Shown here one piece after another: positions 5,800 to 30,484 of a stretch of DNA of 32,000 bases; positions within the stretch are counted from its first letter, which is position 1, and each line of letters begins with the position of its first letter. The notes under the pieces are model-generated. The model made no database searches and was not told the DNA's origin. It saw nothing but the letters and a program-made list of their open reading frames with translations. A program made the translations under genes and the position numbers. Origin of the DNA: Wallemia ichthyophaga EXF-994 (Eukaryota > Fungi > Basidiomycota); the NCBI RefSeq assembly GCF_000400465.1, contig NW_008806290.1:30001-62000 (forward strand). The letters run 5' to 3'.

Positions 5800-8700
5800 A
5801 TGATTTTACTCCCTGGCCCTGCAGCCTTGCCAACTGCTAAGCAGCACTCTCTCTCTCTTGCTGCGAATAAGTCTTTAAATAATGTTAAATCTGTTATAGC
5901 CAGATTCGTTCATTTCGTTAATCTACAAAGTCCTTTAAATGCCCAACAACACTCCATTCTCAATGATCTTCTCGTTTACGGAGAATCCAGCACTCTCGAC
6001 ATCACAAACGCATTCTACGTTATTCCACGCCCAGGTTCAATTACCCCTTGGTCCACAAAGGCCTCTGATATCGCTAAAATGTGTACTTTGGATGGCTTCG
6101 TTGATCGTATCGAGAGAGGTGTGGCTTTCGTCATTGAAACCACTGACAATTCCATTCTCTCTATCAATGATATTGCTCCTATTTCTCATTTGTTATTCGA
6201 TAGAATGACTCAATTACTGATTGACCACCCACCTCTGGACAAAGACATGTTCGAAAAATTTTCACCCGCCCAACTCAACACCGTCCCCCTACCAAAAAAT
6301 GAAAATGATGCTAGAATGACCCTCATTACTGCAAACTCATCTCTCGGCTTGGCCCTCTCTCCCGATGAAATTGAGTACCTCGTCGGCGCCTTCGTCAGTC
6401 ACCCTCAAAATGCCCTCATGAGAGATCCAACTGATGTCGAATTGTTTATGTTTGCTCAAGTCAACTCTGAGCACTGTCGCCACAAGATATTCAACGCTCA
6501 ATGGACTATCGACGGTCACCAACGCGATCTCAGCTTATTCCAAATGATTAGAAACACTGAAAACGTCATTAACGGCAACAACACTGTAAGCGCTTATTCT
6601 GACAACGCTGCCATTTTGAAGGGCTCCAAAGCTGCTAGATTCGCTGCTGTCAACGATGCTACCAACGGTCCACCTGTCTACACCGCCAGCCCCGAGGATA
6701 TGCCCATCTTGGCCAAGGTCGAAACCCACAACCACCCAACGGCTGTATCTCCTTATCCTGGCGCTGCTACAGGATCAGGCGGTGAGATTCGCGATGAAGG
6801 CGCCGTCGGCAGAGGTTCGAAACCTAAAGCTGGCATGAGTGGTTTCACCACCTCCAATTTAATCATCCCAGACAACCGTCAACCTTGGGAAACTGACTTT
6901 GGCAAACCATCCCACATCGCTTCCTCTTTGGATATCATGATTGATGGTCCACTTGGTGCTTCTGCATTCAACAACGAATTTGGTCGGCCTGCCATTTCTG
7001 GCTATTTCCGTACTTTCTCCGAGGAGGTACCTGTTGATAACAAAGGCAAGACTGAAATTAGAGGTTACCATAAACCAATCATGTTGGCAGGTGGTCTTGG
7101 TAATGTCCGCCCTCAATTCACCCACAAAGGTCAGATTAGCGTCGGTGCACATGTCATTGTCCTCGGTGGTCCATCCATGCTCATTGGTTTGGGTGGCGGT
7201 GCTGCCTCTTCCATGACCTCTGGTTCTAGTTCTGCAGAGCTCGATTTCGCAAGTGTGCAGCGCGAGAATCCGGAGATGCAACGTCGCTGTCAGCAGGTTA
7301 TTGACAGCTGCATTTCTTTAGACGACACCAACCCTATTCAGTCCATCCATGATGTTGGCGCTGGTGGTTTGTCCAATGCTTTACCTGAACTTGTTCACGA
7401 TGCTGGTCTAGGCGCTCACTTCGAAATCCGCAACGTCTTGCTAGCTGATGAGAGCATGTCGCCAATGGAGATATGGTGCAACGAGTCGCAGGAGCGCTAT
7501 GTAATGGCTGTCGACCAGACCAACATTGGTGTCTTCGAAGCTATTGCTAGACGTGAACGCTGTCCTTACGCTATCGTTGGACGTGCTACAGAGAGGGAGC
7601 AGCTGGTCCTGACTGACAAGTTACTTGGCAACACCCCAATCGATCTTCCTATGTCCATCCTCTTTGGCAAGACACCTAGAATGTCTCGTCAAGTTGTAAC
7701 CGCCCATCCACATAGGGAGGAATTCGACACCAGTCTTGGTAAATACCTGCATCGGAATATGGAGATAAATGAGATCATGCAGCATTCAGTTGAACGTGTT
7801 TTGAAGTTACCGACAGTAGCCTCGAAATCCTTCTTGATCACCATCGGTGACAGGTCAGTTACCGGTCTTGTCTCGCGCGAGCAGATGGTAGGTCCATGGC
7901 AGGTTCCAGTTGCAGATGTAGCTGTCACGCGTACATCGTATGGATTTGACAATGCTGCGGGTGAGGCTATGGCATGTGGAGAAAGAACACCGCTCGCTCT
8001 TCTTAATGCTGCAGCTAGTGGAAGGATGGCTGTTGCTGAAGCGTTGACTAACGCAGCAGCTTCCAACATAGAGGATCTCACAACAGTCAAGCTCTCAGCC
8101 AACTGGATGAGCGCAGCTGGGTACGAAGGTGAGGGTGCACGTCTTTACGAGACTGTCCAGGCTGTCGGCATGGATCTTTGTCCTAAACTCGGCGTGGGTA
8201 TTCCTGTCGGTAAGGACTCCATGTCCATGTCTATGAAGTGGAATGAGAACGGAGACGACAGACAGGTTACCGCTCCTCTCTCCGTTATCGTCACGGCTTT
8301 CGCTCCTGTTGCCGACGTCGGTTTGTCTTGGACACCACAATTGAGGAGGGATATCGGCGAAACTTCCCTTGTTTTTGTTGATCTCGCAAACAAGAAGCAG
8401 CGTATGGGTGGATCAGCGCTCGCGCAAGTGTTCAAGCAAATCGGTAAGGAGTGTCCGGATGTAGACGACGCGAACCTCATGAAAACATTCTTCGCTGCCT
8501 GTCAACTCGCTCGCCAAGTTGATCCTGAGTTAGTGCTGGCGTACCACGACAGAAGTGATGGTGGTCTTTTCACCACCATCGCTGAGATGGCTTTTGCTGG
8601 TCGATGCGGTGAGTGGGAAGCTTCGTGCATGCAAACCATACCAACTGACAACGCGCAGGTGTTGAGGTGATGACAGACTCGCTTGGATCTGATCCAATAT

Positions 8701-9905
8701 CGTCGCTCTTCAACGAAGAGCTCGGTGTAGTTCTCCAAGTGCAGTCGAACAAGCTGCCTCTGCTTGCTCAAACATTCCACAAGGCCGGTTTCCCCCCAAC
8801 CGCGATCCACGCAATCGGCAGAGTCACGCCTGATAATGAAAACATCACCGTCGTGCAGCACAGCAATATCATCTACGAAAGCACCAGAGCTCAGTTACAG
8901 GAATACTGGGCAGAGACATCGTACAAGATGCAAACGATCCGTGACGACCCGGCATGCGCAGATGAGGAATACGCAACAATCAGAAAATCTGCCGTCGAGA
9001 ACCCAGGTCTGCGCTACAACCTTACTTTTGACCCAGCGCTGTCGAGATTGCCGACATCACTCACTGAGCGTCCGAGTGTAGCTATTTTGCGCGAGCAGGG
9101 AGTAAATGGACATATGGAGATGGCTTGGGCTTTTGACATGGCTGGATTTAAGGCGGTTGATGTGCACATGTCCGATATTCTCTCGGGAAGTGTCTCACTG
9201 CAAGATTTCACCGGTCTGGCTGCATGTGGTGGTTTCTCGTATGGTGATGTCCTTGGTGCTGGTTCTGGCTGGGCGAAGTCGATCCTCCTCAACCCGATAG
9301 CGAGAAAGGAGTTCAAGGAGTTCTTCCATAATGAGCGCAAATTCGCCTTGGGGGTGTGTAACGGCAATCAACTCTTCGGGTGCCTCAAGCCGATTGTACC
9401 CGGCGCAGAACACTGGCCAGAGTGGAAACCAAACCGTTCGAACCGCTTCGAGGCGCGTACGACTATGGTCGAGATCGAGAAGAACACGCAGAGCATCTTC
9501 CTCAAACCACTCGCGGGCTCGAAACTCCCTATAGCCGTCGCTCATGGTGAAGGTAGGGCTGAGTTCAGCGATAACGCTAAGGACGCACTCACCGCTGATG
9601 GGGGTGTCGCTATCAGGTATATCGACAGCGATGATAAGTGGGCTTCTACTTACCCCGCTAATCCTAACGGTTCGCCTGATGCTATCGGGGGTGTAGTCGC
9701 TGCTAATGGTCGCGTTCTCGGTCTGATGCCTCAGTGAGTAGACGCTTCTCGGCATAGCTCGCTTTTGCTAACATAATACTCAAGCCCCGAACGTAACACT
9801 ATGGCTCAGTCTAACTCGTACATTGATCCTACTCAGTCGGCCGCTTGGAAAGGCACTGGACCATGGTTCTCAATGTTCGTCGCTGCGAGACAGTGGGTCG
9901 GATGA
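5800..9905 (+). CDS. ADE6: Phosphoribosylformylglycinamidine synthase (large PurL/FGAMS), 3 exons
   Basis: FAQVNSEHCRHKIFN, KVETHNHPT, GAATGSGGEIRDE, HDVGAGG, HDRSDGGL and glutaminase motifs CGGFSYGDVLGAG and GVCNG are present. The catalytic HPE is formed across the last intron (MPH|PER). The first intron (GTGAGT near 8610) joins ORFs 5800-8670 and 8667-9737; the stop is TGA 9903-9905. Confidence 0.97.
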
Positions 9906-18184: not shown

Positions 18185-18192
18185 AAAAAAAA
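18185..18192 (-). terminator. RNA polymerase III oligo-T terminator (T8)
   Basis: Eight T on the minus strand begin 8 nt after A37 of the tRNA 5' half. Confidence 0.8.
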
Positions 18193-18199
18193 GAAGTCT

Positions 18200-18276
18200 T
18201 ACGAGTCAGGCGCTCTAACCCCTGAGCTAAAAGCGCTTTATGCGCCTTCGCGGATTTGAACCGCGGACCTCCTGAT
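18200..18276 (-). tRNA. tRNA-Thr(CGU), circularly permuted gene (3' half 18276-18241, linker TAAA 18240-18237, 5' half 18236-18200)
   Basis: Rejoining gives a 73-nt cloverleaf: GCGCTTT TA GCTC AGGGGTTA GAGC G CCTGA CTCGTA|A TCAGG AGGTC CGCGG TTCAAAT CCGCG AAGGCGC A. The acceptor stem has 7 bp (one G-U), the D stem 4 bp, the anticodon stem 5 bp and the T stem 5 bp; the anticodon is CGT. Confidence 0.93.
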
Positions 18277-18294
18277 ATCGGCTGCTGAACGTTA

Positions 18295-18345
18295 CCGTTG
18301 CGACAGGACTTCTTGACGGAGTATTACACGTAGATTAAATAATAT
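18295..18345 (-). promoter_or_regulatory. Candidate Pol III promoter elements upstream of the permuted tRNA: AT-rich/TATA-like tract 18345-18334 and A-box-like TGTCGCAACGG 18305-18295
   Basis: TGTCGCAACGG(TA) fits the A-box pattern TRGCNNARYGG at all but one position and ends about 32 nt before the B-box GGTTCAAATCC (18262-18252). ATATTATTTAAT lies further upstream. Function is inferred. Confidence 0.45.
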
Positions 18346-18577: not shown

Positions 18578-21011
18578 ATGGAATATGACTTTCAGAGCGC
18601 ATTTCAACCAGTCACGCCGCCGTATACGGATTCAAGCAGTGCTGAATTCGATGAAGCGATCTCATCTCTACTCGATCAATCGCCGAATGGCACGAGTGAA
18701 TTGGGCGAGACGGCTGAGCTACAGGGCTGGCTAGAAACACAGCCTATCTTCAACGCATACGACGATCCTCTTCAATCCCTTCAGTCCCTCCAAGCTAACC
18801 TCATCGGCAACAGTGTCGGCGTAGATCCTCGCCGGGAATTGATGCTCTCTGGTGAACAGGATTTGCAGGGTGTGCAATTTGCCTACCCTGAGCAACCTTA
18901 TCCAGAAAATCATCTTGCAGAAGATATTAAACCGAAAGCCAAGCGTAAGGCCAAGGATAAGGCTAGCGAGAATGGCACAGTCACAAAAAAGCAGAAATCA
19001 GAAGCGCAGAAGCGTGAGTGATATATGATACAAGTCCTGGACTCTGCTAACGATGATGTCAACCAAGAACGGTTCCCAAAACCACCGCAACCTGTACCGC
19101 CACCACCGCGACAAGGTGGTCCGAAGAATCCATCACACAACGCCGTAGAAAGACGCTACAGAAATAACATAAACACGCGCATGCTCGCGCTGCGATGCGC
19201 TGTACCAGCTCTGGTCGCCCAGCCCCCTCAGACGAGCTCGCGGCGTAAAGCACCCCCGCTCTACGTTGAAGGAGTAGCTGTACCTGGCAAGATCAACAAA
19301 CAGACTGTGCTCATTGGCGCCACGGAATACATACGCCGCCTTAGAGGGAGAGAACAGAGGTTGATGCGCGAGGTTGAACTGCTCAGATCCCAACTGCCAA
19401 TGGCAGAGCAGACAGCATGGGCATATAACTGGGGAGCTGTGGATGATAGAGATCTTTACGATGAGGTGGATGACTTTGATCCGCCTGATAATGCTTTCGT
19501 GGATCTGGTCGATGAGCCAGACACCAAGACTAGCACGGAAGACCTGCAGTCGCAAGAATCGCAGGAGTCACAGGATTCACAGTCTAGCGAGGGCGGAAAC
19601 GCTCCTCGCTACCTTCTCGGCATGTTCTTGTCCTTTAGTTTGCTGCAGAAACCATACACAAAGCAACAACAGTGGCAGCATCAGAATATGTTTCGTAGAA
19701 GCTTTGAAGAGGGACATGTTGTTTCGAGCAGTCTTCCATCTAGCGCAGTTGCAGGGGGAGCGGCAGATGAGATAGATTGGAAGGATCATCTAATTCCTGA
19801 TCTTCTGCATCCACATTTTCATGACATTATCCAGACAGTCCTCATCTGCTTGACGCTCTTTGTGTTGCTGTACCCTCTCTTACCTAGCTTAAAAAGAAAT
19901 CCTGTCACTCAAGCAGCTCAGATTGGCTGGATGACCATTCAGCGACTATTGAAGAGCAGTCTTGGTGTGAGCTGTGGAAAGTTCACAGAGGAAACAATTC
20001 AACGCGCTCAGAAGCAGATTTACAAGCCGAAGGGTGCGTATTGCTTTAAATACCAATCACTTCTAACCCCCGAAGACAGAACACTCAAAGATGGACAGAC
20101 TACACACACATATGCTGCTTTCGACTTCGCCCGGGATGAGGGAATCTCCAGTCGCCCTTGCTACAGCAGCCCTGCACACTAAGTCGAGCAAGCTGTGGAA
20201 AGAAGCGCAGGATATGTATTTGGAGAGTGAACCGAGATATGTCCAGTTAGCATTGGAAAGGGATATCGAAGATGCCCACCAGCTATGCACGATGGGTGCG
20301 AGTAATAAGAAAGCCGACTTGAACGTTTTGCAGAAGATCTCCAGCAGCGTCTCTGTATTAGCACTAGAAGAGCTTTGGAGTTTAATATTCACCCAAATGG
20401 TACAAGAGAAGGCATCAGTAGGGGATGTACAACTCATCAACAAAGCTGTTGGACAGTTGGTGAGCTCTACAAGAAATCTACCAACGGTTGACACTATGTC
20501 TATGTTATCTGCTGCCATGTGGGCTTTATTACAGGGCAAGAAGGAGAGTGCGTTGCGTTTGGCAGCGCAATTAAGTGGTAGAACGGCGTCTTTGAAGTGC
20601 CTGAAGGTGTTCAGAATGCTCACCAAGACTTCTGAGAATCTGGACGATGTTGATGGGAAGGATGATATGTTTGATAGTCAAATTGATGAGGAGATTGAAA
20701 GATGCGACGATTTGGCTACTATAGCCATGCTTTACTTGTCACTCAAAATGTCTTTGCCAGGCAATAAAGGGAAAGGGCAGGGTAAGGCGCTGTATAGGCT
20801 CACACTGCGATTGCGCTCTTTGCTTGGCTCACTCGATGAAAGGAAAGGGAAGCTGATTGATGACGAAACTTATGATGCTGCTGTTGATTCTTTGCAAGTA
20901 ATTGGCTACCAAGTTATAGGAATGAGAATGTCGGCAATTGGTGAGACATGTCATGGAATCGGCATTCGTAATTGGGGACATGTCACTCGCATGGATAGCC
21001 AGGATAGCTAG
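18578..21011 (+). CDS. SRE1: SREBP-type bHLH-ZIP membrane-bound transcription factor (Sre1/SrbA-like), at least 3 exons
   Basis: The basic region SHNAVERRYRNNIN has the SREBP-diagnostic Tyr, followed by KINKQTVLIGATEYIRRL and a zipper. Two hydrophobic segments (YLLGMFLSFSLL; TVLICLTLFVLLYPLL) flank a short loop. Introns lie near 19015-19068 and 20034-20080. The exact C-terminus is uncertain (possible GTGAGA donor at 20941). Confidence 0.8.
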
Positions 21012-29193: not shown

Positions 29194-30484
29194 ATGCTTA
29201 CAAGAACTCTTAGAAGCGTGAGCGTGGTGGCTAATAAGAACAAGGTGGGATACTTGAATATTTCTAGTGTTCCTTTATTAATTTATATCTCAGCCAATCA
29301 CCCACTCACTTCGCCACGTCTCCTCTTCCGCTATGGGCGCTGAAAAACCATCAGACTTACCTTCAAAAGGTAGTGAGCCTTTCAAAGTTCAACTTCATGA
29401 AGACGCTTTCAATGGCTACCTCCTCGATCAGCTCCCTTCTCTCGAAGTTGAAACTACAAAGGATCAGCTCATTGAGTTATACCGCCAAATGACCACTATG
29501 AGACGTATGGAACAAGCCGCTGATCAACTTTACAAGGCCAAGTTGATTCGTGGTTTCTGTCACTTGGCTATCGGTCAGGAAGCTGTTGCCGTCGGTATGG
29601 AAGCTGCTATGACAGACAAGGATCGTTTGATTACTGCTTATAGATGCCACCCTTACGCTGTTCTTCGCGGTGGCTCGATTAAAGGCGTCATCGCTGAGTT
29701 ACTCGGTAGACAAGATGGTATGTCAAACGGTAAAGGTGGCTCCATGCACATCTTCACTCCTACCTTCTTCGGTGGTAACGGTATCGTCGGTGCTCAAGTC
29801 CCTGTCGGCGCTGGTATCGCTTTTGCTCAACAATACCTCAACAACCCTTCCGTAACCTTCTCCATGTACGGTGATGGTGCTGCAAACCAAGGTCAAGTCT
29901 TTGAAGCTTTCAACATTGCGAAACTCTGGAATCTCCCTTGTGTATTTGTTTGTGAGAACAACAAATACGGTATGGGTACAAGCGCAGCTAGATCTTCAAT
30001 GAACGTTGAATACTATAAGCGTGGTGACGTTATACCTGGTTTACAAGTAAACGCTATGGACATTCTCAGCGTTTACCAAGCTTCTCAATTCGCTAAACAG
30101 TGGGCAATCGATCACAAGGGTCCTCTTGTTATGGAAATGGTTACTTACAGATACGGTGGACACTCCATGTCTGACCCTGGTACCACTTACAGATCAAGAG
30201 AGGAGGTTCAACAAATGAGATCCACCAGAGATCCTATCAACGGTCTCAAAGCTAGACTTCTTGAGTGGGATGTCATGTCTGAGGAGGAATTGAAGAAGAT
30301 TGACAAAAACGCTAAGCAAGAAGTTGACCAAGCTGTCAATGAGGCTAAGGAATCACCTGAGCCTTCAATGGATGACTTCTGGTCTGATGTCTACTACAAG
30401 GGCACTGAGCCTGCTTATCTCCGTGGTCGTGAGCCTGAGGAGGGCAAATACTACAACACTGCACCAAATCTCGTTGGTGCTTAG
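29194..30484 (+). CDS. PDA1: Pyruvate dehydrogenase E1 alpha subunit, mitochondrial, 2 exons
   Basis: Presequence exon MLTRTLRSVSVVANKNK splices in frame to PITHSLRHVSSSAMG..., followed by IRGFCHL, ITAYRCH, GKGGSMH, GGNGIVGAQVP, the TPP motif YGDGAANQGQ..E..N and TYRYGGHSMSDPG. Confidence 0.97.

Follow-up and report, generated by a model that had tools for sequence, protein, structure and literature searches.

A circularly permuted tRNA-Thr(CGU) gene in the fungus Wallemia ichthyophaga, with a leader and trailer predicted to pair in an intron-like layout

Circularly permuted tRNA genes have so far been viewed as an oddity of one crenarchaeon and a handful of ultra-small algae, and the literature searched, up to a 2026 review, places them only in algae and Thermofilum pendens, with none described there for fungi or for Wallemia. 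In the algae, each permuted pre-tRNA forms a bulge-helix-bulge (BHB) between its leader and trailer, with a TATA-like sequence upstream of the gene and a stretch of T residues downstream (PMC3978253). Type II genes, which are permuted at the 37/38 junction, are found in Cyanidioschyzon merolae, Ostreococcus, Micromonas and the Bigelowiella nucleomorph, and C. merolae carries a type II permuted tRNA-Thr(CGT) (PMC3978253). The upkeep of permuted tRNAs has been connected with a broad BHB specificity of the endonucleases (PMC3978253). The heterotetrameric eukaryotic splicing endonuclease (TSEN) relies on a ruler that is applied to the mature tRNA body together with a local bulge-helix-loop containing an anticodon-intron (A-I) pair, and a symmetric or strict BHB is therefore not required (PMC10485636).

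Here, we describe a locus in the halophilic basidiomycete W. ichthyophaga that is, by its structural definition, a circularly permuted, type II (junction 37/38) tRNA-Thr(CGU) gene. It lies in the stretch of 32,000 nucleotides that was analyzed as a whole (the window), and its features are collected in the table below. In common with the algal type II genes, the 3' half comes first, the halves are permuted at the 37/38 junction, the intervening sequence is short, and CCA is not encoded (PMC3978253). The leader and trailer can likewise pair around the junction, the expected processing signal for permuted genes, and there are candidate counterparts of the upstream TATA-like element and the downstream T-stretch, with neither signal in the intervening sequence. 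The Wallemia gene differs in its host, a basidiomycete fungus, and in an intervening sequence of 3-4 nt as compared with a eukaryotic minimum of 5 bp (Table 1 of PMC3978253). It differs further in its junction motif, which is predicted to be relaxed, with a central helix of 3 bp and a 25-nt hairpin opposite the 5' bulge. Given the phylogenetic distance, the permuted Thr genes of C. merolae and Wallemia are presumably independent in origin.

Features of the permuted tRNA-Thr(CGU) locus, in window coordinates
Feature	Position	Strand	Remarks
TATA-like element, ATATTATTTAAT	18345-18334	minus	begins about 30 nt before A18314
Leader strand of the outer helix, AAGAAGTC = AAGAAGUC	18314-18307	minus	likely 5' end of the primary transcript
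Leader hairpin, CUGUCGCAACGGUAACGUUCAGCAG, core AACG-GTAA-CGTT	18306-18282	minus	pair probabilities 0.79-1.0 in the constrained fold
Leader 3' end, CCGAU (CCGAT)	18281-18277	minus	3' processing site 18277/18276
3' half of tRNA-Thr(CGU), A38 to discriminator A73	18276-18241	minus	CCA not encoded
Intervening sequence, TAAA (UAAA)	18240-18237	minus	closes the acceptor stem
5' half of tRNA-Thr(CGU), G1 to A37	18236-18200	minus	anticodon CGT at 18203-18201
3-nt bulge, U36, A37 and A(+1)	18201-18199	minus	holds the 5' processing site 18200/18199; stays open in every constrained fold
Trailer strand of the outer helix, GACTTCTT = GACUUCUU	18198-18191	minus	
T8 run, likely Pol III terminator	18192-18185	minus	2-nt overlap with the outer helix

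Several lines of evidence identify the gene. Once its halves are re-joined, ARAGORN calls a tRNA-Thr(cgt) in three lineages, namely the window, the W. ichthyophaga strain contig L005 and L008, an ENA metagenome contig from a distant Wallemia-like species, and the re-joined tRNA has the T-loop GGTTCAAATCC as well as U8, G18 and G19, and U33. Contigs L005, L008, L012-L016, L020, L022 and L023 show the arrangement of the window, with the 3' half preceding the 5' half on one strand. In the comparison of these tRNAs, the proportion of paired cells was 98.4%. The tRNA bodies of the window and L008 differ at seven positions, all seven of them in stems and with pairing kept throughout, as three double compensatory changes (C49-G65 to G-C, G3-C70 to A-U and C4-G69 to U-A) and one change of G-U to G-C (U5-G68 to C-G). 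The L008-type gene, moreover, is identical across six independent metagenome assemblies. A conserved permuted tRNA gene in a fungus is a more notable result than the helix that we describe below, and such a basidiomycete case would bring permuted genes to a group that uses the well-studied pathway of heterotetrameric TSEN and Trl1. It would also account for a tRNA-Thr(CGU) gene of Wallemia escaping the standard tRNA finders. Were the gene matured by the ordinary TSEN and Trl1, it would mean that permuted tRNA genes can arise and persist without an archaeal-like, BHB-only endonuclease.

With the gene as arranged in the genome, ARAGORN indeed called no tRNA in the window, and no Rfam family reached its gathering threshold there, an outcome to be expected of a permuted gene. 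The best sub-threshold Rfam match to the locus was YrlA (RF02553), at 23.5 bits against a gathering score of 69. We rejected this identity, since YrlA is bacterial and the likeness is topological only, arising because the T-arm, the acceptor-like stem and the D-arm share the same permuted order. Scans of JGI metagenome contigs with a junction-spanning pattern, and for a leader followed by the 3' half, returned no matches. The intervening sequence reads TAAA in the window, TGAA in L005 and AAA in L008. The W. ichthyophaga gene also contains an internal TTTT directly after G1-C4, at tRNA positions 5-8 (18233-18230), where L008 has only TTT; this T4 could act as a weak premature Pol III terminator in some organisms.

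Putative signals for transcription flank the gene on both sides. The TATA-like element is not constant from strain to strain (L020 has ATACTATTTAAT and L005 has ATATTGTTTAAT) and is weak in L008. The T-run measures 8 residues in the window, 6-9 in other strains and 5 in L003, a contig from a second species, and in L008. TATA dependence has been described for algal permuted tRNA genes and for fission-yeast tRNA genes (PMC3978253), and by analogy ATATTATTTAAT would be a Pol III promoter element. From the spacing to this weak and variable element, we infer that transcription starts at or near A18314. With a TATA-like element about 30 nt upstream and a T-run right after the helix, the helix would then bring together the very first and last parts of the primary transcript. 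The outer helix of L008 starts 33 nt from an AAAATTT stretch, a distance similar to that in the window, and in L008 a second TATA-like stretch, GATAAGAA at about -34, would give a leader of only a few nucleotides.

The segments 18314-18307 and 18198-18191, which flank the permuted tRNA, are perfect 8-bp reverse complements of each other, and the complementarity that had been claimed in the preliminary description is thus borne out when both are read on the minus strand. The last two pairs use the first two T's of the terminator run. To gauge chance pairing, 9,098 genomic controls were drawn from the same window, each with 77 nt between a 60-nt 'leader' and a 12-nt 'trailer'; perfect complementarity over at least 8 nt occurred in 0.45% of them, and in 0.56% when the trailer was forced to end in T5. 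The outer helix is therefore unlikely by chance (about 0.5% in genomic controls). In support of this notion, the check by folding that had been suggested for the helix came out in its favor, as the helix appears both in the unconstrained minimum-energy fold of 18320-18186 (z = -2.5) and in the constrained folds. When the cloverleaf was imposed, seven of the eight pairs reached probabilities of 0.95-1.0, and the terminal A18314:U pair reached 0.59, rising to 0.76 when the leader was extended. Together, leader and trailer contributed an energy gain that exceeded that of 98.9% of shuffles (P about 0.011).

These figures bear directly on a chance or compositional origin of the pairing, whereby an A/G-rich leader start would simply face a C/U-rich trailer with its oligo-U, and the real leader would be shorter, so that the pairing would be absent from the RNA. 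We consider this account improbable, against the energy test and the presence of leader-trailer pairing in every known permuted tRNA gene (PMC3978253). In its favor, a rate of 0.5% is low but not negligible for a finding that was selected after the fact, two of the pairs fall on terminator T's, and A-rich leaders readily pair with oligo-U. The placement of the transcription start by spacing only, and the few-nucleotide leader that GATAAGAA would give in L008, are also compatible with it.

Under the cloverleaf constraint, the RNA of the window is predicted to run from the anticodon stem through a small loop with the 3' site, then a 3-bp central helix and the 3-nt bulge, to the 8-bp outer helix. 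Here, C32, U33, C34, G35, U36 and A37 correspond to 18205-18200 and A(+1) to 18199 on the minus strand, and the leader ends in C18280, G18279, A18278 and T18277, followed by A38 at 18276. The central helix pairs U33-C34-G35 with A(-2)-G(-3)-C(-4) at probabilities of 0.91-0.95, and the predicted 3' site is an internal loop of 2 nt by 1 nt, with U(-1) and A38 opposite C32. The leader hairpin, placed between the outer and central helices, turns the structure into a three-way junction and branches opposite the 5' bulge. A strict BHB, with a central helix of 4 bp and two 3-nt bulges on opposite strands, is formed in neither the window nor L008, where the prediction gives a 4-bp helix, a 2x2 loop and a 4-nt bulge. 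The leader and trailer are thus predicted to build a relaxed, BHB-like motif around the junction in both.

Part of what the preliminary description had proposed for the junction agrees with this model. U36, A37 and A(+1), which it had left unpaired, are unpaired in all constrained folds, and the sequence does contain the leader end CCGAT ahead of A38, with G(-3) at 18279, as well as the AACG-GTAA-CGTT hairpin (18306-18282). Its A-I pair between C32 and G(-3) fared less well: the two nucleotides are complementary in the window, yet the fold prefers to pair G(-3) with C34, which is equally compatible with the sequence, and L008 has U at -3. Likewise, its statement that a strict BHB is not formed stands, and in place of its single central pair C32:G(-3) the model prefers a 3-bp helix with nucleotides 33-35. 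The broader proposal that the transcript ends pair to mimic an intron matches the algal descriptions (PMC3978253), and the same layout is predicted in L008. Taken as a whole, the earlier interpretation is partly supported, with a helix and an intron-like layout that are credible and fit a known kind.

The predicted motif can be set beside two related architectures. With the archaeal hBHBh' motif it shares the succession of helix, bulge, central helix, bulge and helix, and a 3-nt 5' bulge that would be cut after its second nucleotide. It departs from that motif in a central helix of 3 bp rather than 4 in the window (4 bp in L008), in its 3' side, where the window has a 2x1 internal loop and L008 a 4-nt bulge, and in the side facing the 5' bulge, which is not a continuous helix. 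With the canonical intron of a eukaryotic pre-tRNA it shares processing sites at 37/38, an unpaired 5' site, a mature body open to the ruler and the pairing of leader nucleotides adjacent to the 3' site with the anticodon loop, and a C32:G(-3) pair is possible in the window. Unlike in a canonical pre-tRNA, the Wallemia 'intron' is open at its loop, where the two transcript ends lie, the acceptor stem is closed by a loop, and an A-I pair at -3 is neither predicted nor conserved.

Comparison with relatives gives a mixed picture of the helices. In L008, the same permuted gene occupies the same position and orientation upstream of a gene resembling that of sterol regulatory element-binding protein (SREBP), although the protein encoded beside the tRNA is only 50% identical to that of the window. 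The leader (...GAUGGAUGUUGAGUUG) and trailer (AUCCAAUUUUU) of L008 are unrelated in sequence to those of the window. In its constrained fold, the outer helix comprises 5 bp (UGGAU/AUCCA) and begins at +1, adjoining the 5' site, and the central helix comprises 4 bp (UGAG/CUCG) between C32-G35 and U(-7)-G(-4), with a 4-nt bulge at the 3' site and with U36 and A37 unpaired. Since L008 has U at -3 and its C32 pairs with G(-4), G(-3) is not conserved; nor is the leader hairpin a conserved feature, as it is missing in L008. A layout common to both, defined as a central helix of at least 3 bp that ends at G35 together with an outer helix of at least 5 bp that starts at +1 or +2, arose in 5.5% of shuffled leaders at the composition of the window and in 13% at that of L008, which puts a joint coincidence below 1% for a definition that was set post hoc, when both structures were known. 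The pairing energy of L008 by itself was no better than that of shuffled leaders (P about 0.1-0.17), and it therefore provides no statistically sound covariation. Both a leader and a trailer were available from just two independent lineages, too few to prove true covariation.

The trailer side could also be followed in L003, which comes from the Logan sample SRR25399871 and ends inside the D-arm; a further contig, L006, starts more than 950 nt away from it. The fragment of a NatA subunit encoded by L003 is 89% identical to that of the window. In this contig, the end of the 5' half is followed by AGACTTCTTTTT, which equals the window sequence, so that the 7-nt trailer AGACTTC and the T-run are 100% conserved, while the DNA beyond the T-run cannot be aligned with the window. 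An identical trailer beside unalignable DNA points to selection on the trailer. On the covariation that had been proposed as a check, the trailer is kept in L003, G(-3) is not conserved, and the pairing in L008 is no better than that of shuffles. For a chance origin of the pairing, the comparisons cut both ways, because the behavior of L008 against shuffles is what such an origin would predict, whereas the conserved trailer of L003 and the recurrence of the same predicted layout in L008 are not.

Within W. ichthyophaga, the window-type gene is present in three strain assemblies (L020, L022 and L023), and a fourth, L005 (GCA_004918755.1), carries it with two changes found in no other strain: G3 to C (window 18234), so that the acceptor stem has a C3-C70 mismatch, and TGAA as the linker (window 18239). 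The leader strand of the outer helix is identical in these four gene-carrying strains, and across strains there are zero changes in the 38-nt leader or the 7-nt trailer. L005 nevertheless shows seven differences within the 47 nt just upstream of the leader (18364-18318), and the constancy of leader and trailer against this divergence is suggestive only.

On this basis, we propose how the RNA could be matured. Pol III would initiate at A18314 or close to it, about 30 nt past the start of the TATA-like element, and stop within the T-run, yielding an RNA with the order leader, 3' half, UAAA, 5' half and trailer. Its body would fold into a cloverleaf in which the 4-nt linker closes the acceptor stem, the initial 8 nt of the transcript would pair with the last 8 nt ahead of the oligo-U tail, and C(-4), G(-3) and A(-2) would pair with G35, C34 and U33 of the anticodon loop. 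The paired ends and the pairing with the loop would together present an opened-out 'pseudo-intron', a relaxed BHB. The splicing endonuclease would then cut after A37 and before A38, measuring from the mature body, a Trl1-type ligase would join A37 to A38, and RNase P and tRNase Z would take out the linker, with CCA added. If splicing came first, the intermediate would be circular; if end processing came first, it would be a two-piece complex clamped by the outer helix.

End processing before splicing is the usual order in budding yeast. Were the same order to apply here, two RNA pieces would result, and the 8-bp helix could serve as an extra clamp. For this case, the split tRNA genes of Nanoarchaeum equitans offer a useful analogy, in which complementary non-tRNA extensions unite the 5' and 3' halves for the endonuclease and ligase. 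Unlike in N. equitans, both Wallemia halves reside on one transcript, the host is a eukaryote, and trans-splicing is unneeded.

A permuted tRNA-Thr(CGU) whose ends pair into a pseudo-intron that is spliced by TSEN and Trl1 is, in our judgment, the best explanation of the locus and a somewhat probable one. The body is intact, the predicted 5' site is bulged and correctly spaced, and the leader is predicted to pair with the anticodon loop beside the 3' site, which makes ordinary TSEN and Trl1 the most likely processors, although processing by these enzymes is itself proposed by analogy with algal permuted pre-tRNAs and fungal tRNA splicing. In this scheme, the leader-trailer helix is a candidate for what decides whether the fungal machinery reads the RNA as an intron, although it may be dispensable for a eukaryotic TSEN. 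More tentatively, and as a possibility that falls somewhat short of probable, the permuted gene may provide tRNA-Thr(CGU), possibly the only one of Wallemia, be the first of its kind in fungi and opisthokonts, and be matured by TSEN and Trl1 through a circular or helix-clamped two-piece intermediate for which the helix is required. In S. cerevisiae, tRNA-Thr(CGU) comes from a single essential gene, so that mutants of the Wallemia helix and of the A-I pair could be scored by complementation.

The role of the helix could, however, be a different one. It may form without contributing to the recognition of the cleavage sites, both of which TSEN would find by its ruler on the body, and instead clamp or protect the ends, hold the pieces together after RNase P and tRNase Z have acted, or be left over from the hairpin of an ancestral intron. 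We regard such a passive helix as unlikely, if well short of negligible. The reliance of eukaryotic TSEN on tertiary structure and body distance rather than on a symmetric BHB (PMC10485636), the weak and variable central helix with its non-conserved G(-3), and the fact that the anticodon stem already holds the exon ends after cleavage all fit it. It accounts less readily for a trailer that is kept between two species with unalignable flanks, for the placement of the window helix against the 5' site at exactly BHB-like spacing, and for the lack of significant tandem-duplication relics in the window.

Contigs of several strains and samples also revealed a boundary within the leader. The three Logan contigs L009-L011 and the W. 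ichthyophaga assembly contig L021 (GCA_004917865.1) match the window only as far as 18308, the T of AAGAAGT ahead of the next C; L009 stops there, and L010, L011 and L021 continue into the unrelated sequence GTAAACGTCTT, A or G, and ATCTTTGTGAGGTGAA. No tRNA was found in the 118 nt of L021 that follow 18308. On the other side, the W. ichthyophaga strain contigs L005 and L020-L023 (5/5) end at about 20509-20516, within the SREBP-like gene. These breaks are most simply read as the edges of a segment of about 2.2 kb (18308 to about 20510) that is repeated or rearranged and whose left boundary falls 7 nt into the putative transcript. We rejected an origin of the junction at 18308 in splicing or RNA-seq, since, where an intron is expected, the contigs follow the genome collinearly through an in-frame stop, and no AG acceptor is present. 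We also rejected an inversion between the inverted repeats, since reverse-complementing the tRNA does not give the variant sequence. The arrangement of the tRNA beside the SREBP-like gene also occurs in L008 and is hence ancestral. The boundary does not contradict the helix, and the promoter-proximal 7 nt have a history of their own.

This boundary is one of the grounds for a reading of the locus as a decaying or non-expressed tRNA relic, with the inverted repeat marking the edge of a rearrangement or insertion rather than an RNA structure, and we find that reading very improbable. It would agree with the segment edge exactly at 18308/18307 in L010, L011 and L021 and the end of L009 at the same place, with the C3-C70 mismatch and linker change of L005, and with the silence of the standard tools. 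Decay is hard to reconcile with 7/7 substitutions between the window and L008 that keep pairing, or with a gene that has stayed beside the SREBP-like gene while neighboring proteins are only about 50% identical, and leader and trailer sequences that differ between lineages are a poor fit to the conserved terminal repeats of a mobile element.

An origin of the permuted gene by tandem duplication was considered and set aside for the window, in which no significant relic of a 5' half upstream or a 3' half downstream was present. L008 yielded one marginal match, between ATGCAATTTTT upstream and the trailer ATCCAATTTTT, which was equalled by 53 of 2000 shuffles. ATGCAATTTTT lies about 87-97 nt upstream of A38 in L008 and resembles the trailer together with the terminator, ATCCAATTTTT; marginal as the match is, it may descend from a duplicated 5' half with its trailer, the kind of relic that an origin by tandem duplication predicts.

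The surroundings of the gene assign the window to W. ichthyophaga or a very close relative. The neighboring helix-loop-helix gene is 96% identical to a W. ichthyophaga protein, its protein cluster includes a 'sterol regulatory element-binding protein 1' of strain EXF-994, and four W. ichthyophaga strain assemblies match the 1,250-bp intergenic region at 97.1-98.9% identity. The tRNA lies 264 bp upstream of this SREBP-like gene, in divergent orientation. The open reading frames of the SREBP-like gene span 18578-19021, 19025-20182 (in the same frame, with a stop between them) and 20091-21011, a split that is consistent with short introns. A protein search with the N-terminal open reading frame of L008 gave no matches. 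In the L008-type species, a gene for an E1 dehydrogenase lies directly beside the tRNA/SREBP-like locus (L013 and L016); in the window, the E1 dehydrogenase gene (29333-30484) is about 10 kb away from the tRNA, and the neighbor is the gene for the NatA subunit. These differing neighbors indicate a rearrangement beside the tRNA between the lineages. Elsewhere in the window, the gene for FGAR amidotransferase (5800-9737) is divided into two overlapping open reading frames, 5800-8670 and 8667-9737, with the same split in L003, which probably reflects either a short intron or a gene model with a change of frame.
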